Of a stretch of DNA of 64,000 nt, positions 6,201-63,600 are shown piece after piece (position 1 is the first letter of the stretch; every line of letters begins with the position of its first letter). The stretch is from NCBI GenBank assembly GCA_000708835.1, contig DF237056.1, positions 62,001 to 126,000 of the forward strand. The letters are read 5' to 3'. The notes beneath the pieces are model-generated. The model did not search any database and was not told the DNA's origin. It saw only the letters and a program-made list of their open reading frames with translations. A program made the translations under genes and the position numbers. Source of the DNA: Klebsormidium nitens. Taxonomy: Eukaryota > Plantae > Klebsormidiophyceae.

Positions 6201-9200
6201 AGGAGGGCAACGAATTGGAGTCTGATTGAGTAAAGCTTCGTCAGAGACGCAAAGTAACTCCGTTCACAGCAATCTCAAGGTCGTGAAGTGCCAAAAAATT
6301 GCCAGGGTGGAGCTTCTGTGCCAGCTGCGCAGTGATGCAGAAACTAAAACCTTTCGGCTCCAAATTCCTCACGTGCTGCTTCCAACCCGCAAGTTTGGAG
6401 TGCGAGCATCAGCCATTCATATCTTTCGAGCTACCGGCTAATTGCCGAGATGGTCGAACATCCTTTAGCCAGCCCTCCACTAAACAAACCCTGCCAAACT
6501 GCCAACATTTGTCCGCTATTTCACTGACGAGTCCGATGTTTCCTTACGGGTCGCCCGAACTGCTATTCTTCATCTGCCCTCCAGTTGCCACGTGTACTGC
6601 TTCCGCCGAGGCTGCCTCCAAGGCGGCGGCCGAGGCCGCGGCCGCGCTGTATCGCGCCAAGCGCGCGCAGCAGGAGGCGTCGGCGGGTTTGCAGCCGAAA
6701 GAGACGCGGCTCGTGGTGGAGGCGGCCGCGGCGGACCTGCACGCGCTGCTCAAACAAGCCGCGCGCGCAAAGGAGGAGGCGGAGGCCGCGAAGCAGGTAT
6801 GGGGAGTCATTAACGGGGATGTTCGGAAGTTTTGAGTTGAAAAGACAGACGTTTTGCACGCTTACGTCGATGTTAGTCCTTCACATATTTTCTTCGCATC
6901 TCGTTCACAGGTTGCTTCTGACTGGGTACGACTTTGCTTTTTCCCGCAGTCTTGTGTAACTGCATTGACTAAAAATGCGCTTTACTTTTCCAGGCCGCCA
7001 TGGCAGCCGCGAAGTCCGCACTGGAAGCCGCGGACTCCGCCCAATGTTCCGCTGCGGACGTCGGAACGTCGACAACCGCGGCCGAGGACGCCGTGCGCGC
7101 GCAGCAAGACGCAGAAAGCGCGCGCGCAAAAGCGGAAGCGTCGCGAGAGAGGGCGGAGAAGGCGGCGGCGGACGCGGACAAGCTGTGGCGGAAAGCGGAA
7201 CGGACGGCGTCCGGCGAGACGGAACCAGCGGAAGAGGCCGGAGAGGAAGCTGAAAAAGTAAGAAACAGCGAAGAAGCTTTTCCATCCCGTGAATTCCATC
7301 TAACGAAGCAGTGGAAATTCAACAGGTGTATCGACTTGGAAAGGTCCCGAGGCTCAAAGGCAGACTCTTACGCTTGACGGTGCTGTTCAAACCTGGTTCT
7401 CCGGATACAATGGAAGGTATTCTCTGGATTTTAGACATGACTTACTGTTTCAGATGCATTGCGCCCAAATCAAAAGAAATAGTTTGTTCGAGGCAGAGAC
7501 GGCGTTTTGAGTTTCGCTGAGTCGCCCATTGCTCACCAGTTCGCCTTTCCTGCAGGCCCCTGTCTCCGCTGTGCCGCCCGCTCCGCCCGCGCCCGCTCCG
7601 CTCTCCGGCGAGGATTCCGTTTTCCTCCTGGACGCCTGGCGGAACCTGGAGTTGGAATACTGCGCGAGCGTGCGCGCGTCCCTGCGCAAGTGCCGGCAGG
7701 AGAGGGAAAAGGCCGTCGCTGACTGCCGCGCGGTCAAGACGGAGTTCCTGGACTTCCTCAACCGGCAGGACGGGAAGCAGCGGATCGTGGACGAGTTCCA
7801 GGTGAGACGGCACGGTAGCATGTTTTCATCAATTCCACCATCACAAACCACGACGCGCAAAAGACGTTTGATTCTCAACTTGCGCATCCATTTACTCGTG
7901 GAATATGACAAACTCAGCTTACATATAGCGAGTCATTCGCATGGGGCGGCGTAACAGAAATACAGCGTTACCTGCCCATCTGAGGCGTTCCAATTGTGAT
8001 TCCCCCACTTACTCAGAGCCGTGATAGCTAAACCGCTTTGTAACCCTCAAAGTTTTCAATGCTGGCAAATCTCAAATGCCTCAGTTACATGGAGCATATA
8101 AGTTTCAAAACTAGGCCCTGAATTTTGCCAAACACTGCAGTCTTGAGCCCTCAACCTCAAACCCCTTAAAGGTCCTAAACTCTCAATTCCTGACACGTCA
8201 AGCCCCGTATGTGCAGGAGGAGTTCAACGAGGTCGACTCGCGGCTGCGGCACAATGGCAGCATGAAAGAAGAGCTGGGCGAAAAGGTGCAGGAACTCCGC
8301 GACGCGCTCTGGCAGGAGTGCGACGCGCGCAAGGAAGAGTCCGCGCGCGAGAAGGCCGCGCGCGTCGCGGAGGGCCGCGTCGGCAGCCACGTGGCGGAGA
8401 TCGCGGGCGCGCACGCGGAGCTCGCGCAGAAGGAGGTGGGCATCTCGTTGCGTGTTGTCTTGTGCAAGCGCAGCAGATTTTCGACGCGTTTACCGCTGAC
8501 AGCAGATATCTTGCTTTTCTTTGCAACTTTTTCTATCGTAGCATATTTGAGAAACGCATACACGGATCATTTCCGCTCCTGGTCGAAAATGAAACATTTC
8601 CCATTGAAACCCGCTGACATCCTCGTCGAATTGCTCGGTTGCGTAAGGGTAATAGAAGCGCTGTTGCATGTAGAGTCAAACTCATAGTTATGTCAAATGT
8701 CGTCTCGACCAACCAAGCTACAACTATTAGTCGACTAGCAGACATTAGAAACCCTCTTCTCGAACCATGTTGTGCAGTTGTTGCGCCTGCTGTCTACCCT
8801 CGCTTTTCTCCAGACCTATCACGCGCGCCGCTTCGCGCTCCAAACCCCAAACCTCCTGCCCGAACTCTCCGCCCCAACCGACCCCCCACCTCTCCCCTCT
8901 GATCCTTCCTGGGTCGCGGCCGCGCCGCCAGCGCTCGCGAGCGTTGCGCGCCGCGCGCTCCGCGCTTTACATACGTCACGCACGGCCCTCAATGAAGTCA
9001 TCAGCCCCCCGGAAAAGAAAGAGTCGGCCGCGCCCGCGCGGCAGCAGAGCGACAAGAGCGCAAAGGGGGGGAAGCGCGTGTCGGAGGCCGGGAAGTCGAA
9101 GCCCGCCAAAAAGGGCGACAAAGCAGCGGCGAACGAGCCGAGTGAGTCGCCCGAATCGGCGCCCGAGGCGGCCGCGGACCCGGAGGTTTTGGCGCGAAAA

Positions 9201-37652: not shown

Positions 37653-40600
37653 ATGGGGGATGCTGTCAGCAAAAGGCACGCCCTCCAAACAGAAACAATG
37701 GTTGAGGGGGACTCCCCGGTTATCCAAGGCGCACAGCCTGAACCTGCAGAAGATGCACGTGTGGGGGATGGATCGACAGTGGAAGGAGGCGTCGAGGGCA
37801 GCATAGCGGAAGCGGAAAGCAAACAGGATAATGCTGCCAAAGGGGATGCCGCTTCAATAGAGGGGCCTGTTTCTGCTCAGGAGCTTGGGTTAGGTGATGA
37901 AGCGGAGAGAGCCACCTTGGTGGAGAAGGCGCAGGTTGGGGTGCTGGAGGGAGGGAGGAAAGAGGGCAGTGCAGAGGAGGGGGCCAGTTCTGCCCAGGTT
38001 GTTGCAAGCAATCCGGAGAGACCTGGGGAAGGGGGAGCAGAAGACAGGGGCGGAGCACGGGCTGAAAAGGAAGGGAACGGAGCGGAGCTAGCTTCGGAGG
38101 GGGCCAACGAGGGACAGAAGGCTAGTGATCCGGAAGAGAGAACGGGGCCAATGGATGCAGAGAAAGGGGGGATCGCTAGTACCCGGGTTGACGGGCCTGA
38201 TTGCGCGGGTGCACTGGAAGCAGCACGCTCATTTGGAACGGAAGGCATACCTGCCCAGGTCGAGAGCAATGCAGGCCCTTTGGTAGGGGGGCCTGATTCG
38301 GGGGCAATTGCGTGGCCTTTCGAGGATGGCAAAGGAGAAGGGAAGGGAGAGAAGGCGGAGCAGGAGACTCTAGGGCAGGCAGATAGTGTTCTGGTCGCGG
38401 AGGCTGAGCCAATCACCAAGCAGAATGCAGAGCCAAAACCTGGGGAGGATCAAAGCAAAGCGGGGGGAGGAGACACCCTGGATGCAGCCTTTCCCAATGC
38501 CCCGGGGTCGGGGGGATACCTCGCGCGGTCGCACCCCTCGTTCAATCGGGGCAAAAGCTTTGGTCACTCTCCGGGCGAAGAGAAAGCGGACACGCGCTCG
38601 CTCGCCCCGTCCAAAGGCGATCTGGTGCTCAATCTGGTCAACGACCTGGGGCCAATCCGGGCTGGGGGACAGTTCTCATCAGGCGGTATCCTGCCCCTGA
38701 CCAGCACCGACCAACCAGGTGCCGCCACCTGGCAGCAACAGCTGCTGGCCCTGCAGAACAGCGGCAAAGCCGGAGGCGGTGAGGACTTGGCGGTGGGTCC
38801 TCTCGTGCGGAAGAGCGAAGGTCTGAGCCAGGATTTGAACTTGACGTGGGCCGGAGTCGCAGAAGCAGACCATGCGTCAGAGGAGGTGACGAAGAACCTG
38901 GAGGCACAGCTGGCGGTGCTTCAGAAGGTGGCGGCAACTAGGTTTGGGGACAAGTCCGGGGCGCCACCCTCCGTGGAGAAGGAGTCGCACGAGGAGACGA
39001 TGCGCAAGCTGAAAGCGGAGTTGGCCTCACTGGAGCAGCGTGCAGCGGCGCAGAATCTGCACAAGAAAGGGGGGCAGAGTGTCAGGGGGCGGGGGCGGGG
39101 GTTTGCAGAGTTACGCATGGCAGTCCCGCCAGGTTTGAATTTGGGGGCGCCAGTCTCGGTTTCAGGAGAGGCTGTGGGGGCCTCCACAGAGGAGCTCCTC
39201 CGAGAGGGCTCTGAGGGGGGGTTAACGCGGCTGAGGAAGCGGAGGCGGCCGAATGGCTCGTACAATTGTCAGGTATGGCGGTCAGCTTCGTCTCCATATT
39301 TGGGGCTGGCTTCGCAATGCATTGGACATTGTCGACATTGCCTTCAGTGGTTGACCACTTTTTCCATTGGAAAAGCAAGCTGGGAAAGTGAGGTACTGCC
39401 AAGATTCATAAGCGTGGGCTGGGCTTCGAAGCAACTTTATTAAGTGTATCTCTGGTAGCCAAGTGGTCGTTTTCCAGCACCTGACCTGCTCTGGTTTTGT
39501 CCCTTTTCCTAGCATTCCTACGTAGATGAGCCACGTGCAGCCCGTGGGGGCTGCTTCTGCAACCGAGGCTAGCCTGCGTCCTAATTTTCACGATGTTCAC
39601 TTGCTCAGACAACCGGCCAGCGGTCCTTTTGCTACCTATGTAGCAGTGTCGGGCGCTTCTGGCGCTTTTGAAGGCGGCTGCGGATGAGCATGGGAACCGT
39701 CGTCGCTGCTATGACATAGTTCAGGTGGCATGATTCCGAGGTAGGATACTAACAGTCCCCGGGAATAGGACCTGACTGAACATTTGCACGGCAAACTCCC
39801 GCCGTCCGCACCCCTACTCACTCGCTCCAAAACCCCCACCTACTCCGACTATCATCCGGGCCATCACCTTATGCTATTCAGTGGTTGCTACTAAGCCGTA
39901 ATCATATCTTGCTTTGCCAGGTGGAGGGCTGCGAGGAGAATCTGGAGCACGCCAAGGCATACAACAAGCGGCACCACGTGTGCTGGGTGCACTCGCGTGC
40001 TTGGGAGGTGCTCATCCATGGAGTGCTCTCCCGCTTCTGCCAGCAGTGCAGCAGGTGCGTCGCCCTTGCCAGCATTCTCTTTCCCACAATTCCCTGAATA
40101 GAGCACGGTGCCTTTCAAGATCCCACGTGGTTTTAGTGGCATTCTCGAAGAGGCAGAGTGCACAGTCGAAGTCGCTGCCCAATCTGCACGTGCGAAGTGC
40201 GACAACAGAAAGAATTGCATTGGAGACTGGTCGCTGAATGCGGGTGCGTCCGCTGACGCCCTCTTTCAAAGTTCGGATGGTATCTACAAGTCTACATTCC
40301 TGTAGCCACAGGCGTCCACGGGGTTCACCTGTCTACGGGAACTTCGCGTTCCTTGTTTGTTGTGTTCGAAAGGAGTGCTCCGGGAGCGTGATCAACCAGG
40401 GTGCATGGCCTCGTTTGGACACTCTGTTTGCCAGTGTCCTGTCTTCCTTCCTAGCGTTTTAGCGTCTGTCAAGCACTTCGATAAAAGAATGGTCTCAGGG
40501 GCTGCCGATTGGCACAAGCCAAACTTAATTTCGGTTTAAAATCGTAGTAACGTTCCGGGTCAAAACGTGGGCCCAAGACAGAGTAAAGCGGCCCAATCTT

Positions 40601-42535
40601 GACCATCAGGCGTTTGCGCCTCTTTACCCTTCTAGCCAAACGCTTGTTTACAGAAGTTTTATATGAAGCATCGCCAACGCTCGCTTTTTATTGTTCCAGG
40701 TTCCATGACGTGCGCGCGTTCGACGAGATCAAGCGCAGCTGCCGCGAGAGGTTGCTGCATCACAACAAGCGGAGGCGGACCATCTTGGACATGGGGGACG
40801 CTGCCAGGGGGAGCGGGGACGTGTCTGATAAAGGTGAAATCACTGGAGCTCTTTTGGTTGGGCTTTTGGTTTCAGGTGGAGTGGATGAGACGTCCAGAGG
40901 CGGATACTGAAGAACTGGTACTTTTGCCAAGCTTCCTTCAACTTTGGTTGATCCAGGAAGGATTGAAGTCGATTGAAGTCAGGGCTCGTATTCAAAGGAC
41001 ATATTTTCCAGGGCCAAGCCAAGGTTGCCTACTTTCGTGACTTCGGAAGAAGGTTCGTCTGCCAAGCAGGAGGCAGCTATCTGGATTGTAAAAAAGATAC
41101 AGTTGTCGAGCATGCGAACCGCCTGTCCATTGTCAAAGCCGATTACCAAAAGTAAGATGCTCATCCAGCCCCATTGCTGTTTGCAGAGAAGGAACCACCT
41201 CCACCTGCCAAGGACAGCGCCGCCAAGGTCAAGCGCGCCCGGCCACCTCCTCAAGACACCCCCCCCAAATCAGCGCCCGAGCCAGACCCCCTCGCGCGCG
41301 CTCTAGACACGCTGATGAAGGCCCGGGAGCAGCTGGGGGGGGGCCGAACGGACATTTCGCGTCCCCCCCCGGATCGGCTGACATTTTCAACGGCCCCCGG
41401 CCCTCCTCCAGGGACGTACGAGAGCAACCCGCTGAACAGACCCGGCGCTAACCTGCTGCTTAACCCGACGACCCCGATGCGCCACAATAGTACGGAGCTC
41501 ACGCTTTCTCGTCGCACATCCGGGTTCGAGGTTCTGGACCAGGTAACGGGACGGGCAGGGGGCGGTGTGAATACCTTCCCCCTGGGGGGATCCCTGGCGC
41601 AGAGCTTCCAGTCCCCCCCGGGGGAGCAGTACCCCCCGGCCCCAATGTCGCGGCAGCTGGCCAGCGTTCCGACGGGGTTCGAGAGACTGTTGCAAACGCC
41701 GCCGCGGGCGGAGAGCGCTGGGCAGGGGGTGGATCGCGCGCACAGTCCGTTCCTGGACATTCTGATGAGGAGTCAGCACGCGCTGCGAGACCCGTCGCCG
41801 CAGAAGGGGTTTGAGTTAACCCAGCACCGGTTTAGCCAGGCGCTGCAAGAAGCAGAGAAGGCGCAGCTCGAGAGGCCCAATGACTTGGCGTCAGAAGTGG
41901 CGATCCGCAGCCCGCTGCTGGCGGCGTACGTTCCGGAGTATGACGGGATGAGGGCCGCGAGGGCGGGGAACAACGCGGCTACAAATAATACTGCGAATAG
42001 CTCGTTGAGGAGTCCGACTTACGACATGCTCACAGACTTCATCGGCGGGGGCCAACGTGGTGGCGGCACGCTCCCGCTTGGGTTTGCGGAGCGGGACGCA
42101 GGCGGCGGCCAGAGCCTTTTCGATTCTGGACTGGGTATGGCGCGAGACCATAGCTCGGCGCACGCAAGCAGTTTGCTCAGGCTCATGTCGTCGCACGTCG
42201 AGAGCGCGTCCCCCGTCAAGGAGCCAACGAACTTCCTCAGAGGTCTGGATGGTCCTCTTGGGCTTTACGGGCTGCCCAGCCAAGGCCACGTGCAACCGCC
42301 TCGCGACCAGCCAGGCTCGTGGCTTGCAAACAATGACCAAAGGGAACAAACAGCGGCCTTGCACAGGGAGTTTCAGAGGCTCATTCAAAGTCAAACACGC
42401 GCGGCGGACCTCGGTGGTGGGGCAGAGGGCGCGCAAGCCCCTTTTGCTGGTTTGTCCTCGCAATTAGGATTCCAGGGTCAGGAGCCTGCGCTTGGAAATC
42501 GAGGCTTCAAACTAAACGATTGGACTTTCAATTAG
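37653..42535 (+). CDS. SPL: SBP-box (SQUAMOSA promoter binding protein-like) transcription factor, 4 exons, 1078 aa
   Basis: Exons 37653-39272, 39921-40054, 40700-40833 and 41187-42535 total 3237 nt and are phase-consistent. They give CQ|VEGCEENLEHAKAYNKRHHVCWVHSRAWEVLIHGVLSRFCQQCSR|FHDVRAFDEIKRSCRERLLHHNKRRR, with all eight Zn ligands and the basic NLS. The intron at CSR|FH is the one typical of SBP genes. Confidence 0.93.
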
Positions 42536-43874
42536 GGAGTGGTTGTGCAAAAGATCCTAGCTTTCGTGGTGTAAGCAAGGTTTGCATCGATCTCCAAAAC
42601 GTGTACACAAACATCGAAACCAAAAGCAGAAACGATAAGAAAAAGCGTATGACAACCCCGCGTCAAGGCACAGTAGATTGTATTAGCCTGCTTAGGGTTT
42701 CAAAGGATCCGACTCTTGCTTGACATGAAGTTAGCAGCGTTCAAGGCATTTCAGAATATTGAAATAGGGTGTAAGAGCCGGCGTGGCGGCCAAATCATTG
42801 AATATAAGTATGATATCAACACATCAGCTGATCTAGAGAGTTGATAGCTGGCATGCGATTGCACTCCATCCAGGCTTGCTAAATGGAACTCTCACGAACA
42901 AAGTACGTAAAAAATGCTCGATGCAATTGTTGAATCTCCACGGCCCCAAAATTGCTTTGTTTGCACCAAGAGCAAGGCTTGATCGAGTCCGACGGTTGTC
43001 GGAGTGGAAGTTCACATGCCGGGAGCCTGCAATCTTTAGGTGCAATTCGAGCCATATCGTAAGTCACATGTCATTGTTGACGAATCTGTGTCAACGCGTG
43101 TCATGATCTGTGTCAATCTATCACAACGCGCGGTGTGCACCGCAAGACACACTGACATGCATTATGCATTCAATGCAGAAGCTCTCAGTATGATCCGACA
43201 TCATGCATTGCCATGATAATCTCATGCACATGGCCGTACGCCCTATATAGTACCCGGCGCAGTACCGTACTTCTCTGTAACGGCCAGCAAAAACGTACTA
43301 TATAGTAAACTGAGACTCAGTAAAGTCAGTTTTGCGGCCTAGGTACAAAAAGTATGTGGTGACAGTACGTGCCATGATGCAGCACCCAAACCAGGTTCAA
43401 TATGTCGCAAACTATATTTGTTGCAAAGGATGATTTGCATGCAGACTCACACTGACAGAATATGGCCGTAGGCGCCGGCGGCACCGTCGCAACAGCCGGC
43501 CTAGGCCATGCATGTGCGCAAGGTAGGCCCTGGGCAGCAGTGTACGCGAAGTGAAGCCGCATACGGTTGCAGCCACCGGCCGCATAACTGCACGGTTATA
43601 TGTGCATGCAGCTATATAATCATGACGGTAAGTTGGAGTCCAAAATATTTTATAAACGACCGTCTAGCTGCTAGCGCTACAAATGACCATTTAAGAATCG
43701 GACCAAGAATTAAAGTACGGTACCATAATGGCCTGCTTCATTATGGTACGGCACTTGCAACGGTCAAAGAATTCGGTTATGCAAGTCTGTTGGGAGATGA
43801 GCTCCGAAAGATTTCGTTGCCCCAGCACGCAAACCAGCCAGGAGGTCGATACCAAAGTAATAGAACCTTCAGAC

Positions 43875-46800
43875 CTATGCTTCGCCGTATACACTATCTA
43901 CATCGTCACTGGAAGTTACCTCCTTAACCGATGGTTCGTGATAAGCCATCTCTTCAAAGGCCGCTTCTATCAGCGCCCTATCTGACGGACCCGAGATATC
44001 AACCCCAGAGAATCTTGCTGGATCTTGCACAATGCTATCAAGCTTGTGGAGTTTCTCTAGGTCCAGCCTTTTCATCAAGATCTTTTCCTCTACGACCGTC
44101 ACAGGACTGTTTTGGCAAACTTGACTAATGAGATACTCATTTTTGACGTAATGGAACTTGTTCAACCTATCCGGCTCCGCTTTGACTGTCACGAGCTGGG
44201 CTTGACTCTTGAAAACGGTGATCACACCGAAGGCCCCTTCGCTATTGGTGACTAGAGACCACGCTGCCAGATTCTCCGGATCCTGCTCGTACATATTCCT
44301 TTCCCCAGTGGGGACGCCTTGTCCGGTTATGTTCGTTTGACTTTGCATCAGATAGAACCGGTCGAAGTCCAGCCCAGTAAACCACTCCGACATCGAGTCC
44401 ATTCCCACGATTATCTCTACCCGCTCCATACACCCGATCGCCAACAGCTCCACCCGCACTTCCAGGGTCAGACGCGATCCCCCTGGCAATAAGCTATACG
44501 TCATGGTGATCCGTGCAACCGCCTCCATGAGACGCGTACTGTTAGCGTCCGTTGTTACGACGTACTTCGGCACGTCGTCGTCACATGTGAACTCCCAATT
44601 CACCACGTCAATCCGCGTCCGGATCTCCTCCCCCTCGTATACGAAGTTGACAAAGTTTCCGCCGTAGCGCACCCCCCTTCCCAAGATGAGCTGCTTGGTC
44701 GGCAGCGTATGTGTCAGCACCTCCATGTCCCCCAGCGTATACCCCTGAAACGCCCCGATCCCGTTGTGCGTATACGAGATCCCCGACCGGCCTCTCCGGA
44801 TCTTACACCCTTTACCGCGCGGAATATAGGACGCAAAAAGCAGCCCTTCGTAAGAAAGCTGCTTCAGCGCCCCCGCCGCCGCGCGGCGCTCCGCGCTCGT
44901 CTCGCCGAACAACACCGCGCGAGCGACGTCCTCGGCAATAAGGTGGCCCCCAACCATCGCATTCCGGCTCTTAAGCTGCGCGCCAAACGCGGCCAACTCG
45001 ACCTGCCGCTCGGGGTCCCCTTCCGGCCACGTGTCCCACCCCCCGGCCCAAAGGCCCTTGCGCGCGAGCATGGGAGTCGTCCGGTTTGCGGCGACCCGGG
45101 CTAGCGTTATTGCCCACTCGTCCGCAACGGCCGGCCAGCTACGGTCGCCCTCTTTCAGGGTTGCCCGCCCGCGCTGCATCGTTTCTCGCAACGTCGCGTT
45201 TCGGAGGATTGCGATCACCGAGACGGCGAGGGAACGGGGGCTGTTGATGGGGGTCACGGTGCAGGGGGAGCTCGTATGGAGCTTGATGTTGGTCGAGTTG
45301 AGGGAGCCGCATAAGTGCTCGGAATAAGGGGAGACGGACGCGATCGCGGGGATGCCCAGGGCGATGGCCATGTCGAGGGCGCGGGACGAAATCTGTAGAC
45401 GTAGAAGACATAAGCGATCAGTACTTGCTACAGATGAGATCTTATCATAAGGTACAAGATATGAAAGTAGGAGGCCTGTGGTAGCACGGTACTCACATTG
45501 GCGGCATGAAAAGCTATCTGCGAGGCAAAGAGGGGAGAAAAGGGATCAATGCTGGTCATAAGCGGTAGGTTCTCACGAGCGAACCCTGTCAAGGACAAGG
45601 AAGGGTTCCGACGAAACATGTGGGGCAGGACGGGATCTGCGGGGCAGCCGAGAGGTCGTCAGCATGGCTTTCGAAGAACCAGTGAGCAATTATTGGAGTT
45701 TTGGGCCACACTGGGACAAAATGTGAAGTGCAGGGGACACGTTGCGCAACCGTTTCACCATTGAGACTGACACAGAAGAAACGATCTGTGGTGAATTGTG
45801 ACGGACACAGAAACACAGTCCAGCGTCCTCCTAGAAACGTAGGGAGCAATCACAGAATGGCACCGCTTACGAGACTTATAAGCAAAAGGATCCTGCTTTT
45901 GGCTGCTCGGAGAAGCTGCATTTGCGTCAGGCAAAAGAGCCTGACGATAGCAAAGGTCGCCCACCATGAAAGAATCAGAGTCTGGCGTATACAGCGGTCA
46001 CAGCTGAAACTTTGAAGGCTTGTGGGTCCCGAATCTGGAAAGTTCGGGAGTTTGATAATCTCAACGGTAGAGAATTCAAATTCAGACTCCCAAAAACCGT
46101 TGAAACTTTCTTCACGGTATTCAGGACTCCTAAGCCTATTTGGAGCCGCACTGAAGGTTCAATGGTAGATACTCTTCGCTTGCGATTTCTAGCAAGTCTG
46201 TCGGTTTAAAAAAGACGCCGTGCATCTTCCCTGGCCAGGTCGCAAAAGTTTTGAACATTGCAACTTATTTGATGTGACACCAGAAGGCTTTCAACAGTAC
46301 CACCCTTCTTTTGTTCGGCAGCCCCGAACTTTCTCAAAGTTGCAGATGAAACCACCTTATGAGTGACACCTAATGAAGCACTTACATGGCACGAGCGGTC
46401 TGCCGAGGGCGTGAGATCAAGTTCTGACCACAAGGCTTCTGGTTTGAAAGTACCGTGCCTTGTCAAACATAACTCTGATGCATTGGAGCCACTAACAATC
46501 TTTCCCCAACACACCACACTGGCCTGTAAGCGAGGGCCCTTTCAGCACAGAATCTACTTCTCAAAGTGCAAGGGATGTCAGCAATGCTATGCGCATTATC
46601 AATCAATCCACAAAAGCTTCTATGTTTGCCGTGATCAATTCAGCGGGTGGATTGAAGGACGCGCTAGAAACTTCCCCTCGAGAGATATGCCTCATCGTAC
46701 AACGCTGCTGAAGTGCCCAGCAGAAATGGAAAATGCAATTTCATGAACAGTCATGGCAATCCGAGGTGGTTGCCTGCAGACTCATAGTGCAGATTTGGAT

Positions 46801-48162
46801 CCAGCACATTCCACAAACTTCAAGAGAGCTGACAGCAGACATTTGCCTGCCGCTGCAAAGCTGTGGGGAAAGTGGAACAAAGGTGCCCACATGACAATCT
46901 TAAGAAAAAGGGCTGCTTACGAGCTGACCCATTCAACCCCAGACATAGTGGTTTGGCTACTGCCAAACCCCTCAACCTTTGCAAACCGGTAAACCATCTT
47001 TGACCATAACCTAGAAACCCACAGGCTAACCAAAACCCGAAGGCTAACCCAAAACCCTCACCTTGTTGGGGTCGTCTGAGGGGTCAACAATGACATCCGC
47101 GCGCCGGAACCACCCGACCAGCTCCTCAAAGCTCTGCGGCTCTTGGACGATCACGTTAACTCTCCCCACCCCCGCCCGCTTCCCCAGCTTCGCCAAATGG
47201 TCCATGTAGTCTACAGTCTGCCCTGGTTCCTGCTGACCCAGAACGACGTACATTGTTTTTGGGATCAAGACGCGCACGCCCTTCATTGCTTCCATCATCC
47301 GCTCCTGCCCCCGGATGGGAGAAACTAGGCCCGGGGTCAGAATCACGCGACGGTCCTCCGACACGGGCGCGAAGGTCATGTTGGGCGCCTGAGCGAAGTT
47401 GTGGGGCAGCCATCCCGTGGGGAGAAGCGTGCAGGATAGGTTTCGGGAGACAAGTTGGTTCAGCGTTTTGCAGGCGGAGAGGAGGGGCGCTGTGACGTGG
47501 GCTGCGCTCGCAAGCACTTTCTCCAGGATCATCTGCTTATGGACCTCATAGTCGGCTGGGAGGCTATGGATGTTGACCACATAGGGTATGGTGAGGTGGT
47601 CCAAAAGGACCAAGAGCAGCTCTCCATAATGGCCCCCGTAGACGTCAAAGTCGTGCTGCACGCTCAGCACTTCGAACTCCCGGTTGATGTAATCGGCTGC
47701 CAGGAAGTAGTCCTTGTGCGCCTCTTTCCTGAACAAGAAGGCCACCTCCTCCCCGTAATCATCCGCCGTGTTTCTCTCGTCCACAATTACTACGCTGACC
47801 TTTGCTCTGCGAAGCAGCGGATTGGTACTGTTGGCCACACCCAGGGAGAAAAGGTCCCGCGTGTAACCGGCTACGTCTGACAGCTGAGGGGGGTATGAAG
47901 ACAGGATCCCAATCCTGAGGGGGGTCATCTGTGCAGGCCATAATGGCATTCCGTAGTCCGTGTCTTGGTCCTCAATCTGACCCGTAAGCGCAATGTGGCC
48001 CGTTATAGTGTACACCAGATGCAGAATGCCCAGCATCGCAATAATCTGATAGATGCGCCTCTGCGAGAGGATCTGCAGTGCGCTCCCTTTGGGCGCATTT
48101 GGCGACGGGGCTGCCTTCGTCTTCCCCAGTGCCGCCGCCCATTGCGACCAGGGGAGGTCCAT
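43875..48162 (-). CDS. Membrane-anchored family 4 (GT-B) glycosyltransferase fused to an about 370-aa beta-rich domain of unknown function, 872 aa, 2 coding exons
   Basis: Exons 48162-47062 and 45392-43875 join at phase 0 (DPNK|ISSRALDMAIALG). Motifs: N-terminal hydrophobic anchor (IYQIIAMLGILHLVYTITG), IGILSSYPP, VQHDFDVYGG, VNIHSL, ILTPGLVSPIRGQE, EELVGWFRRADVIVDP, RSWPAVADEW. These match the recalled bacterial GT4 subfamily (TYPPRxCGIATF / QHEFGIFGG / TFGLLSPNKG / QITSGTLAYA). Confidence 0.82.
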
Positions 48163-50131
48163 TTGCAGAGACGCCCGGAGCGGCAGAGCAAAAGCTTGGT
48201 TGCTGGAAGTTACAGCTTAGATGCAAGGGAAGCGCGGAAATGCCTGCCAGCGCTAGCTGCGATGACAGGACGTGACGCTTTTTATGGTTTGCTGCATCAT
48301 TTACTCGTAGGATTTGTTCCAAACTCCAACTCAGGAGTTGGATAAGCTGCAAATGAAGGTCGAGGGTGTTCTCCAGTTCTCCACGCTCCAAGAACCAAGG
48401 ATCCTAGAGAGCGGCTCCCGAATCCTGGCGCCAAAGCAATGGAGGTTCCATGGCGCATTGCGCATCATCGCGCGACCTGAAGGCTGAAATGTCAAGGTGC
48501 AGAAGAGACATGGGGAAAACAGAAGCTAGAAGCAGTAGAAGGTGCACTTGTTGAAAGAGGCTGTTGAAAGCTAGATCATGATTCATCAGCGGCATATACG
48601 ACTGGCGTAGGTACCTCCCTCAGGATACCTCTCGAGTCTCTAGCCTCCCAGACCCGGGTATGATTTTCGGTCGTAGTTGTGCATCCGCGAGTGAACGCTA
48701 CCGGAAGTTGCGGGGATTATGGTACGTACCGTACCCTTCTGCATTGAATCTGCATAATGCACGATCTGTCAGGGCCCGGTAAAACCGACGGCGCATCATA
48801 CGGCGCAATTACAGTAGTTGCTGCGCAGACGGTCACGTGCAGTGCAACTGGCCGGCGGACTGGAGGCTGGCCGCCTGCTAACAAACCTCAAGTCCAACTT
48901 TCTTTGTGAAGAAGCGCTCATGAGCGTCTCTTAAGCGCGCATGGCTGTGATGTCTACGTCGTTTTCATGGTGGCAACCGAGTCTAGTGCAGCCAAGAGTT
49001 GAGCTACGTCGAATCTGCCACTAGCAATGTAGCATACACGGCATTGGTGCCCTTCATGAAATCAATGTTTTGGATATTTGATGACATGTTACCGTATAGT
49101 GATTTCGTAAACAGTACTTTTGCTGGAATTTAACAAGATAGCCAGCTCTGCCCAATGTTGTAAGCGATGCCGCCAGAGCGCGAGCAGTGCAGATTCAAGG
49201 CGAACGCAGGCTCAGGAGACGGGTGATCATTGGTGACAGTCAAGTGCACATAGGAACGCAAGAAAATTGGTGAGGAACTGTACTTAAAGGTGCCTCATTA
49301 CTTGCAGTCACGTTGCATGATTCGATATGCGAAGCTGACGTCATCCGACTCGAGCACGTCCTTCTCACGACTTGGCGATTGGACAAGGGTTTTCCGTCCT
49401 CAATCAGCTGTCAAAAGTTTACTACTTCACGATTTTCTCCTCACGAAGCACTTTATGCTCGAGCGTCGGAAGCGGCAACGGGTAGAGGTGTCAGAACACG
49501 CTTAAAGAGCCTGATTGAAACACGTATGCACGTCAATCCAAACGAGGATAAAAGTCCAACTATGCTAAGTAGTACCCTTGACCGAAGAGTGTGTTTTCTG
49601 CATGATTGATATCATCACTTTTACTTCTTGATGCATGAATAAGCACAGTCGAGACGTTGGTACAAAGCAGATTCTCGATTGCCAGGGGACGGCGACGGCG
49701 GATGATACTTTTCATTGCGGCTGGTGACCGAAGTCAGAACATTGGTTGATACGAACATTCAGTGACAATGTTAAGCAGGTCGTATGTACAGGAAAGCTCA
49801 AGACCAGTAAGACTTGGACCACTGTTGACAAGCGCTACGTAACCCACTTCCCATGGGATGCTCCTCGACCTACGCGGACATGTCTGAAGAATTTTGCGCT
49901 AACCTCTAATCGTAGACGCCCAAACTCCGTTGCTGGTCCAGCACTCAAGCCGTATCGCTGCTTCGCTTCTTCTAGAGTTGATTTTTCTCCCCTGTTTTGC
50001 GCCGCGACCAAAGCCCTCTGCTATCAACCAACCCTCTCCGGAACGTGATCATCCTGTGCATCTCCTCCGCTCCACGTTTCTGACGTCATCTTTCTTCTGC
50101 TGAATCGCCCCCGGTTCCAACTTCCGTGGCG

Positions 50132-60600: not shown

Positions 60601-63600
60601 TGTCGCTGGTATGCTCAGAGGGCTGGCCGCAAGAGCAGACAACCCGGCCTAAGCTTAGGTAAGCGCATTGGATCTCTTGGTCAGAATCCGTCTGCGCCCT
60701 GCCGCGGATGAATGTCCGGACTCCATTCCTGGTGAGTTCAGCTCGCTTTAAGCTCCGCAAGGAAGGCAGATCAGCAAAACGGCTATTGAGGTTGACAACC
60801 ACAATCAGACGGTTCCAAAAGCCTCACCTGAAAGTTGTTGAGCTCCTCGTCGCTCAGGATCCCGTCCTTGTCCTCGTCGCACAGTGTGAATATCCTCTTG
60901 AGGGCGCGTGTACACCGCGGGGTGAGGCGCTGCGTGCGTGAGTCGTACAGGGGCGGCAGCGGGTGCATTACCGCCTTCTGCGCGTAATAGAAGACCTCCC
61001 CGACCTGGGTGCCCGCCTTTGCCGAGCACTCCAGGGTGGTTTCGACCTCGGGGAACTCATTCATCAGCTCCGTAGCCACCTGATGGTAAGGAATGTGTCA
61101 GAGAAGAATGTGTCAAGAAATAGATTGGAGTAGGTTATCCTGAGGTGCAAGTTTAGTAAGCAATCCTGAGGTGACCTTTCTGACAAAACTAGGTTCTTGA
61201 AGGGGCAAGGTAATTTAGGCAACCCTGAGGTGAGCTTTCTGATTGAACTAGGTTTGTTGAAGGCGCGAAATAAAACAAGGCTCACCCTGAGGTGAAAGGT
61301 AAGTGCCGAGTGCCTACATAGAAGCAAATCGAGCCAGCCGGCAAGAACGTCATCACTACCACAAGCTCCATGCGAGAGGTGCTCCACAATAAGTGAAGCA
61401 ATGAACAGCCTAGGAATCGACGGGGCAACGAAACGATGGAGGCGATGCTCACGCCAAGCTTGGCCAACCTTATTCAAACAGTCCCGTAGATACGCACTGG
61501 CACTTACTGGATCAACCATCGTAAGATCCTTTTCAGCCCCACAAATATAGACCAGCCCCACGATCACAAACCTTTCTGGTATGTCCAATCTCCAGAATCC
61601 CACCTTTGACCGCTGAATTGGATAAAGCACGGGCCTGGAAGCATGCTCCTCAGGGAAACTTGCATGCCGCCCTTACCTGTTCCAGTGCCGGTTGCCTGTC
61701 TGTCCTGAGGTCTTGCTTGCACCCCACCAGGCAGATCGGCGCCTTGAGCTTCAACCGCCGCACCTCCGGTAGCCAGTGCGATCGCAACCGGCTGAACGTC
61801 TCCTGCCGGTCAGTCGCATATGTGATGATAATGGCGTCCGCTTTTTTGAGCTCCTGCTCCACCGTGGGCCTGCGCGCAAGTACTTGTGGTGAATGAAGGG
61901 TGGACGTCCTTCCTACTTTGTTCTCCTTCTTTACTTTGTCAGACATTCCCCAGGCTAGTGTTCACCGATCACAATGTGACCACAATAATCATGGCGTCCG
62001 CGGTCAGCCTGCTCAACCCAGGTCCTGCATGCATCTGATTGTGATCCCTTGCTTGCACTTGGTGGATCCTTCGCTAACTAATTGTCCTCCTCTTACACTT
62101 TTCCGACCGCTGTATGCTTTTCACTACCCTTCTTTTCTCAGACTATCCTTCTTCGGTGCATTTTGTTATCAGCCAACACCAAGCAGATTCCTGAAGCATG
62201 CTACTAAACGATGGCTCATTATCAGCGTAACCCTCTTTCTCTCCTCTCGAGGATCTCCGCTTAATACTTTGAGGATTGCTGTCGCAACCAGCTTTGCATA
62301 GAAGCGCACTGAACCACGTCATCATGGGAAGCACAGACTGCTTATATTGAACCTTTCGGAACCCAACAACAACGTCAGAGCCAGAGTTCCTAGTGTTCAG
62401 TGACTCCACCAACTCACCAACAGCAGGACATTATGAGCAGATGGCATGTCATTGTCCAACTCTCAGAGGCAAGGCAATAAAACAAGGCGGGGATCGATGA
62501 CGGGAGGCTGCTCCTTTGAGAGTACCACCACCAACCATCTCAAACCTCAAATGCATGTGAGTGATGCACACCAAGGGGTGCAAAAAAAGCTGAAAGAAAA
62601 CCGAGCGATATATGGCAGACATGCACGCGTAGAGCTTCAGAGAACGGATTAAACCAATATCATCGCTCCGAAGAGCTCGGCGCCCACTGAGAACCAGCGG
62701 GCGGGTTTGTATGTGTATGATCTCATCAGCAGCCAACGAACGTGCAAACGAGGCGCTTGCATTTCCAATTTGCTTGGACAACCCTGGAGAACCCTAAATG
62801 CTTGTAACCTGGAAACGTGCTGAAAATCTGGGGATATAAACCAGAGGCAGAGCTTACCGAGCAGAAGGCCAAGATTCTTAAGGCTCCTTATATATTGCAA
62901 GTCATTGAGGTAATATAAAAGTTTCGCTCTTTCGCTGTGCTTATGGTTGTGACAAAATCTGCAGCCAGCTTGCTGAGAGAAACATTCCCAAGATAGAACT
63001 ACAAAGTGGAAGCTTCATGCAAGTGTAAGCAGGCCACCTCAAAGGGACAAGCAACTTCTGGTCAAGCAACACATGACCTGGTTAAGCAACTGTGTCTTCA
63101 ACTCCCATCACAGAAGACCAGGAAAAGAATGCTGCACAGCAAGTTTTGCAATTCTGCCCTAATTCATCCCAGAACACAGGTTCTCCTCCAGCAAGAGCTC
63201 TGACAGCAAGAGCTCTGACAGCAATGCAAAGACGGACAGAGAAACCTTGTAAGACCCACAGCAAGCTTCAGCAAGCTTCAGATAGTACCACTGAGGATCT
63301 AAGCATGCTGCTACACTAAAGCAATCGACTGGTAGCTAAAACCAAGCGAACCTAAGAGCTGGTTCCGCAAAAGCAAGCCATCATGCAATTCGCAACAACA
63401 GCGGCACTTAGAAGCATCAAGTTCAACCAAAAACGAACAATTGTGTGTACAAGGTCTTGGCGGCCAAACAGACTTCCTGTCAGTGATAGCTGCATGGCAA
63501 GTGCCTGGGATTCAAACTTCATAGCACAGCAGCCCACCAAAGTGCGTAAATAACCTTCCCAAGATACGGGCCTCCCTCTGACATTGAAAAAGGAACAGCA

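Follow-up and report, generated by a model that had tools for sequence, protein, structure and literature searches.

A two-exon gene on the minus strand of contig DF237056.1 of the alga Klebsormidium nitens (assembly GCA_000708835.1) encodes a membrane-anchored GT4-type glycosyltransferase that is joined to a galactose-mutarotase-like β-sandwich. The gene, KFL_001070160, lies within a stretch of 64,000 nucleotides (contig positions 62,001 to 126,000), termed the window below. The reading that we favor, with modest confidence, is that its product is a type II glycosyltransferase of the Golgi or secretory pathway with a C-terminal supersandwich that serves to bind the acceptor glycan. The GT4 identity of the protein is already contained in public annotation, in which UniRef names it a glycosyl transferase family 1 protein. 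New here are the assignment of the C-terminal fold, the delineation of an algal family with a GT4-to-supersandwich architecture, and the description of a remodeled donor site in KFL_001070160.

Two long open reading frames (ORFs) are found on the minus strand of the window, at 48162..47044 and 45371..43875. They are connected by a donor site, AAG/GTGAGG at 47062/47061, and an acceptor site, TCTACAG/ATT at 45393/45392, both of which are canonical and together keep the frame, resulting in an exon 1 of 367 amino acids, an exon 2 of 505 amino acids, and a total of 872 codons. A search with exon 2 returned the public K. nitens protein KFL_001070160 (record P0003, 872 amino acids), in which residues 368–872 are 100% identical to the translated exon, and a scripted comparison showed that the translations of exon 1 and exon 2 form the start and the end, respectively, of P0003. 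This database record was used for all full-length steps described below. The ORFs, the splice sites, and P0003 thus bear out an earlier note, made from the sequence of the window alone, that had proposed 872 codons with one coding intron. Matches of the paralogs to exon 1 stop at 47059–47062 in tblastn, and when the whole window was searched by tblastn with P0003 and three relatives, neither a hidden exon nor a duplicated exon piece appeared in the intron (45393..47061). No Rfam family is found in window positions 42000–50000. The intron position, at codon 367/368, is common to the paralog KFL_000150320, which has three exons, to a homolog that is 39% identical (L006), and to an ortholog (L001). 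Because this position is common to paralogs that are 36–39% identical, the intron is older than the duplication.

The region spanning residues ~80–475 folds into a GT-B domain of the GT4 family. In a phmmer search, P0003 matched 1464 proteins at E ≤ 1e-3, of which 628 reach E ≤ 1e-10, collinear with the query over residues ~80–475; the description here is of the best 150 of the 1464 matches, behind which weak relatives of the C-terminal region only could be hidden. All those of the 628 relatives that were scanned against Pfam are GT4 proteins. Single-sequence searches of the window protein are far less informative: Pfam gives no match at E ≤ 1 for exon 1, exon 2, or P0003, NCBIfam gives only a weak match to MshA (8e-6), and phmmer searches of the PDB with each exon, with P0003, and with the paralog record P0006 gave nothing useful. 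The 40-sequence alignment A2 has the consensus STYPPxxCGIAxFT ... QHEFGIFGG ... LHT ... PHG ... GLxxPxKGIE ... PYxxxxQxSSGTLxYAxGxGKAVVST, and a profile of A2, which includes P0003, matches the solved GT4 chains of SPS (6e-25), MshA (1e-23), PimA (2.5e-21), GlgM (1.6e-10), and BshA 6n1x (3.7e-6). In the full-length AlphaFold model built on A2 (m955fd5c79db4), the GT-B domain has a predicted local distance difference test (pLDDT) score of ~75–97, exceeding 90 in most 10-residue blocks of residues 80–472, and Foldseek overlays it on PimA (2gej), BshA, SPS, MshA (3c4q), and GlgM with template modeling (TM) scores by target of 0.80, 0.78, 0.76, 0.72, and 0.69, respectively. The GT-B fold and GT4 family membership of this region are established. 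The motif-by-motif correspondence to a bacterial GT4 subfamily that had been noticed earlier is likewise upheld by the consensus, the phmmer matches, the profile, and the fold.

The C-terminal region yields no family match to sequence methods, Pfam and its Aldose_epim family included. An AlphaFold model of residues 490–872, calculated from an 11-row alignment, contains a β core at residues ~565–825 with a pLDDT of ~85–95 over most of its length. The closest PDB structures in Foldseek are Slr1438, galactose mutarotases, the accessory domains of GH36 and GH38 enzymes, and GH94 phosphorylases (E ~1e-7, probability 1.0), and the structural neighbors of an Atlas model agree with the same assignment. 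As judged from these models, the domain is a galactose-mutarotase-like β-supersandwich; the matches fix its fold, not its ligand or activity. Within the conserved motif GMDSMS, D699 and S702 are invariant in the family. The region that the earlier note could describe only as β-rich and perhaps carbohydrate-related is therefore real and conserved, and the AlphaFold and Foldseek results lend support to the carbohydrate-related guess.

At the N terminus, there is a single hydrophobic peak at residues 37–59 (Kyte-Doolittle 1.77), and the full-length model forms a helix at residues 28–49. The 36 residues that precede the anchor contain five positive charges and one negative charge, and the 21 residues that follow it contain no positive and four negative charges, such that an N-in, type II orientation is expected from the positive-inside rule. 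On the presumed lumenal side there are 8 N-x-S/T sequons, compared with 3.5 ± 1.7 in shuffled sequences (p ~0.014), and the sequons are mostly retained in orthologs. Most full-length family members have an N-terminal hydrophobic segment, Mesotaenium model P0007 being without one. The single hydrophobic segment, the flanking charges, and the sequons support the type-II-like anchor and the secretory route that had been suggested before, and a type II topology of KFL_001070160 is predicted on these sequence features.

The donor site of KFL_001070160 is remodeled. In P0003, 17 of the 53 highly conserved columns deviate from the family consensus, the changes being C95S, G96D, E171D, G173D, T200S, H249T, K284R, H312E, Q367K, G371R, T386S, and six more. 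In the alignment, PIRG replaces PxKG and KISSRALD replaces QxSSGTLxYA, two substitutions that the earlier note had recorded correctly. Among the donor-binding residues by which GT4 membership can be judged (the xKG lysine and the loop equivalent to EX7E), K284R, Q367K, and G371R are found, and the N-terminal glycine loop carries G96D; these columns are ≥90% conserved among 39 relatives. Both sampled orthologs carry every scorable change except H249T and, in P0002, the change at G173, which is T rather than D; G371R is not scorable in the orthologs, which are gapped there. Relative to the 82%-identical ortholog on contig L009, the ratio of nonsynonymous to synonymous substitution rates (dN/dS) of exon 2 is 0.116/0.593 = 0.20, with regional values of 0.16 for the β domain, 0.32 for the GT4 tail, and 0.15 for the linker; relative to the more distant L001 ortholog, it is ~0.17–0.23, with dS saturated. 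For exon 1, the identity to the orthologs is 81% and 67%. The terminal branch of P0003 measures 1.06, versus 0.60 for the paralog KFL_000150320. By these measures, the gene is constrained by purifying selection yet fast-evolving at its active-site loops. Because the orthologs share most of the changes and dN/dS is ~0.2, the protein is expected to be functional but altered, either with a changed specificity or in a noncatalytic role.

In the favored reading, a short cytosolic N terminus and one signal-anchor helix would precede a lumenal or extracytoplasmic GT4 domain (GT-B, retaining-type), from which a helical linker would lead to the C-terminal supersandwich. Using a nucleotide sugar as the donor, the GT4 domain would glycosylate a glycan or a glycoprotein in the Golgi or in a cell-wall pathway, and the supersandwich may hold or select the acceptor polymer. 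Supersandwich folds bind carbohydrate in glycoside hydrolases, phosphorylases, and lyases. The remodeled motifs, which are mostly shared by orthologs and constrained in a fast-evolving paralog of KFL_000150320, suggest a changed donor or acceptor specificity. Several points weigh against this reading. Among the known eukaryotic GT4 enzymes, most are oriented toward the cytosol, and a lumenal one is not the default. The packing of the domains is uncertain in the full-length model (predicted TM score 0.62; linker pLDDT <50), and P0003 as a single sequence fails Pfam Glycos_transf_1. Moreover, G96D, G173D, H249T, Q367K, and G371R are nonconservative changes at near-invariant positions (>90% of relatives), and the phosphate-binding lysine of PxKG is an arginine in P0003, so that catalysis may be lost.

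The last of these points leads to the main rival, which we regard as unlikely: that the GT4 domain is inactive and that the protein partners another, for instance KFL_000150320, by binding carbohydrate or nucleotide sugar, as a scaffold, or as a regulator, or else is a lumenal lectin. Consistent with such a role, 17 of the 53 conserved columns are changed, among them G96D, G173D, H249T, K284R, Q367K, and G371R in the GT4 donor-binding loops, the terminal branch is nearly double that of the paralog, and Pfam recognizes the GT4 domain of the paralog but not that of P0003 (P0006 scores above the PF00534/PF13692 gathering threshold, as do other family members). However, E171D, K284R, T200S, and T386S are conservative, all six alignment-invariant columns (H170, P193, G250, G278, G309, and W453) are retained, and confidence in the predicted GT-B fold is high; the GT4 part is also under purifying selection (dN/dS 0.17–0.32), though this is compatible with either reading. 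A further alternative concerns the other end of the protein, where the supersandwich could itself be catalytic, akin to a mutarotase, a hydrolase, or a lyase, making the protein bifunctional. The fold is common to true enzymes, the aldose 1-epimerases, and conserved polar residues are present at R627, D699 and S702 (GMDSMS), Y735, H781 and Y782 (FHYV), and E802 (ExK), but the domain has no Pfam match, Aldose_epim (PF01263) included, and in most of the matched structures it is an accessory domain; a catalytic role is rather improbable, and an acceptor-binding role for the supersandwich of a type II glycosyltransferase is preferred.

The C-terminal domain was surveyed by a local phmmer search with residues 490–872 against all retrieved proteins. 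It is present in the Klebsormidium-type orthologs P0004 and P0005, in the K. nitens paralog KFL_000150320 (P0006, 5.5e-58), in three Mesotaenium endlicherianum proteins (P0007, P0009, and P0014), in a EukProt transcript (P0012/P0154), and in three further contig proteins (P0010, P0011, and P0015), whose contigs are eukaryote-like, with sparse, Pfam-less ORF calls. A protein of the glaucophyte Gloeochaete wittrockiana (P0016/P0155) contains the second half of the domain only (7e-8). None of the bacterial matches among the retrieved proteins contains it. Homologous loci L003 and L004 have extra homologous exons in other frames, upstream or downstream, and introns also occur in L005 and L006. A word-index protein search with exon 1, exon 2, and a C-terminal-only profile returned only Klebsormidium-like orthologs and, at that sensitivity, no stand-alone or bacterial supersandwich homolog, and pattern scans with the C-terminal profile of GTDB genomes and of a metagenome collection found no relative, blanks that are weak evidence because these methods are of limited sensitivity and the metagenome scan also missed the known contig L001. 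Fourteen proteins match P0003 at E ≤ 1e-30, six of them without an organism label, and no land plant or chlorophyte is named among the labeled ones, which suggests a patchy eukaryotic distribution. Literature searches yielded nothing relevant on the locus tag KFL_001070160 or on Klebsormidium GT4 enzymes and horizontal gene transfer. These proteins form a small, eukaryote-only family, represented in Klebsormidium, Mesotaenium, a glaucophyte, and other algae, that is old in algae.

The relation of this family to bacterial GT4 proteins was addressed with two unrooted trees, a FastTree tree of all 144 usable GT4 domains and an IQ-TREE tree (LG+G4, with Shimodaira–Hasegawa-like approximate likelihood ratio test support) of 52 of those. 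Both trees contain a branch, with support of 99 (FastTree) and 97 (IQ-TREE), that separates the 13 eukaryote-type rows from all of the remaining prokaryote-type rows, 131 and 39, respectively. P0003 and P0006 are sisters (98) within a core clade of 10 rows (98–99). No bacterial sequence is nested among the algal ones in either tree, and neither tree indicates a privileged bacterial donor.

The earlier note had read the gene as a horizontally acquired, bacterial-type GT4 that was domesticated with an anchor and fused to another domain, which would mean a recent transfer into the Klebsormidium lineage. Three features agree with that account: the closest relatives beyond the algal family are bacterial GT4 proteins, which are very numerous, the gene has a single intron, and the eukaryotic distribution is patchy. 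Nevertheless, the account is now highly improbable. The bacterial matches are 24–32% identical, with E ~1e-25 or weaker, and among the matches listed they are roughly equidistant. The full architecture occurs in Mesotaenium, in at least four proteins, and part of it in a glaucophyte, the intron position is as old as described above, homologs on other eukaryotic contigs have several introns, the guanine-plus-cytosine content of the gene (0.52–0.56) is ordinary for the window (0.49–0.60), and the adjacent SBP-box gene is likewise intron-poor. The architecture in other algae, the split in the trees, the shared intron, the ordinary base composition, and the intron-poor neighbor therefore speak against a recent horizontal transfer, which is not supported and, as a recent event, is largely refuted; that the GT4 module came from bacteria in the distant past is plausible, the trees being unrooted. 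The earlier note would have given up its proposal if orthologs of the same architecture were widespread across Archaeplastida and grouped with eukaryotic sequences. Homologs of the same architecture do exist in Archaeplastida and do group with eukaryotic sequences, but their distribution is patchy, not widespread. KFL_001070160 thus adds no case of gene transfer from a bacterium to an alga.

Streptophyte algae such as Klebsormidium are a reference point for the origins of plant cell walls, and to our knowledge synthases have yet to be assigned to most of the polymers in their walls and mucilage. A predicted secretory GT4 enzyme with a built-in domain of carbohydrate-binding fold, present in Klebsormidium and Mesotaenium, is a concrete, testable candidate for such a lineage-specific glycan, and the pair of a canonical and a motif-remodeled paralog offers a natural experiment on the evolution of the GT4 donor site or on the formation of a pseudoenzyme. 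A bolder proposal, which at present is doubtful, is that these proteins constitute an undescribed eukaryotic family of lumenal type II GT4 enzymes with an acceptor-binding supersandwich that would build a wall or mucilage glycan of streptophyte algae and glaucophytes not made by land plants, the Klebsormidium copy having gained a new donor specificity through its PIRG and KISSR loops.

Table 1. Features of KFL_001070160 in window coordinates
Feature	Position	Strand	Basis
Exon 1, codons 1–367: predicted cytosolic tail, anchor, N-terminal Rossmann half of GT4, start of the GT4 C-terminal half	47062..48162	-	ORF, GT donor at 47061, P0003 match
Single intron, 1669 nt, GT..AG, between K367 and I368, within the nucleotide-sugar-binding motif	45393..47061	-	Splice sites
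Exon 2, codons 368–872 + stop	43875..45392	-	ORF, splice sites, P0003 identity
Predicted type II signal-anchor helix, residues ~28–59	47986..48081	-	Hydrophobicity, model helix, flank charges
GT4 (GT-B) domain part 1, residues 80–367; motifs QHDFDVYGG (consensus QHEFGIFGG) and PIRG (consensus PxKG, window 47308-47319)	47062..47925	-	phmmer, model, Foldseek
GT4 domain part 2, residues 368–472; contains ISSRALDMAIALGIPAIAS (family consensus xSSGTLxYAxGxGKAVVST)	45078..45392	-	phmmer, alignment, model
Low-confidence, mostly helical linker, residues ~473–560	44814..45077	-	pLDDT <60 in both models
Galactose-mutarotase-like β-supersandwich, residues ~561–827; motifs GxGVRYGGxFV, GMDSMS, FHYV, ExK	44013..44813	-	
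Low-confidence acidic C-terminal tail, residues 828–872	43878..44012	-	pLDDT <50 in both models

The gene adjacent to KFL_001070160 encodes an SBP-box (SQUAMOSA-promoter-binding) protein of 1078 amino acids (window 37653–42535, plus strand). As inferred from ORFs, 1049 of its 1078 codons fall in two ORFs of 596 and 453 amino acids, making this gene intron-poor; the contrast in exon number between KFL_001070160 and its neighbors, on which the earlier note had relied, fails for the nearest one. The adjacency of the SBP-box and GT4 genes is kept in the ortholog contig L009, in which the SBP-box gene lies downstream.

Several other loci of the family have features of their own. One Klebsormidium-like read set (Logan SRR23617307) contains two family members, on contigs L006 and L009: the L009 member is the ortholog with 82% identity to the window gene, and the L006 member shares ~40% identity with each of the two K. 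nitens paralogs and carries an additional intron near codon 590. The paralog types in Klebsormidiophyceae therefore number at least two and possibly three. In the K. nitens paralog KFL_000150320 (L005, DF236964.1), positions 6440–6790, at the junction of intron 2 and exon 3, contain three tandem copies with a period of ~130–146 nt. The repeated segment consists of the last ~60 nt of the intron and the first ~70 nt of exon 3 and codes for the donor-loop motif QVSSGVLALAVGLKRPAIATPF. Its two upstream copies (66% identical at the protein level) retain a CAG acceptor but run into stops, and thus resemble junction duplicates that have decayed, or else decoy acceptors. On a 6.4-kb contig (L002; GCA_020064125.1, JAITZQ012866508.1), the intronless 857-amino acid member P0010 adjoins a GT2 gene. 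A EukProt transcript of Lapot gusevi (P0031, 1637 amino acids; possibly a contamination) combines two Laminin_G_3 matches, one GT2 domain, and two GT4 domains, the last of which falls on the algal-family side of the tree; P0031 has no supersandwich.

The bacterial GT4 subfamily with the motifs QHEFGIFGG...PxKG...QxSSGTLxYA contains the same GT-B domain as KFL_001070160, collinear over ~390 residues and with the same order of motifs. Its members are annotated at source as "glycosyltransferase involved in cell wall biosynthesis" or "mannosyltransferase" and have no NCBIfam name. They differ from KFL_001070160, to which they are 24–32% identical, in lacking both the anchor and the supersandwich, and many residues that are near-invariant in the bacterial subfamily are altered in KFL_001070160. 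Bacterial relatives of ~760 amino acids were considered as possible carriers of the same fusion and rejected, their C-terminal part being unmatched by the window C-terminal domain in phmmer. That part is different: in P0018, it gives weak C5-epimerase-C/GH88-like (α/α)6 matches, and in nine others that were scanned, it has no Pfam match. A bacterial contig from a metagenome-assembled genome (L008:6508-13246, SESU01000006.1) carries a gene run of a phosphomannomutase, the GT4 protein P0023, a mannose-6-phosphate-isomerase-type cupin, a C5-epimerase-C-like protein, a BON protein, and a GH94 phosphorylase. The faint Pfam match to C5-epim_C in the C-terminal part of P0018 recurs in the C5-epimerase-C-like protein of this run. 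The gene context of P0023 hints at GDP-mannose as the donor in the bacterial subfamily, which says little about the remodeled KFL_001070160.

The structures of several GT4 enzymes have been solved, including PimA (2gej), BshA (6n1x), MshA (3c4q), SPS Tll1590 (6kih), and GlgM (6tvp). They adopt the same GT-B fold of two Rossmann domains and are 12–17% identical to KFL_001070160; these bacterial enzymes are cytosolic, either soluble or peripheral. By comparison of motifs, the canonical EX7E motif is not recognizable in the GT4 subfamily of KFL_001070160. Counterparts of the supersandwich are found in GalM, and in the accessory domains of GH36, GH38, GH2, GH94, GH129, and PL26 enzymes and of YidC, at 4–12% identity. 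In KFL_001070160, the supersandwich is joined to a glycosyltransferase, not to a hydrolase, a phosphorylase, or a lyase. The same GT4-to-supersandwich architecture is observed in KFL_000150320 (835 amino acids), in the Mesotaenium protein ME000039S06694, and in related proteins. The anchor is seen in P0006, whereas the Mesotaenium model P0007 begins directly at the GT4 domain. KFL_000150320 and ME000039S06694 are 36% and 28% identical to KFL_001070160, respectively, and differ from it in the donor site, where KFL_000150320 and the Mesotaenium proteins retain the canonical motifs HEYGIFGG, PxKG or PVKS, and QVSSG.

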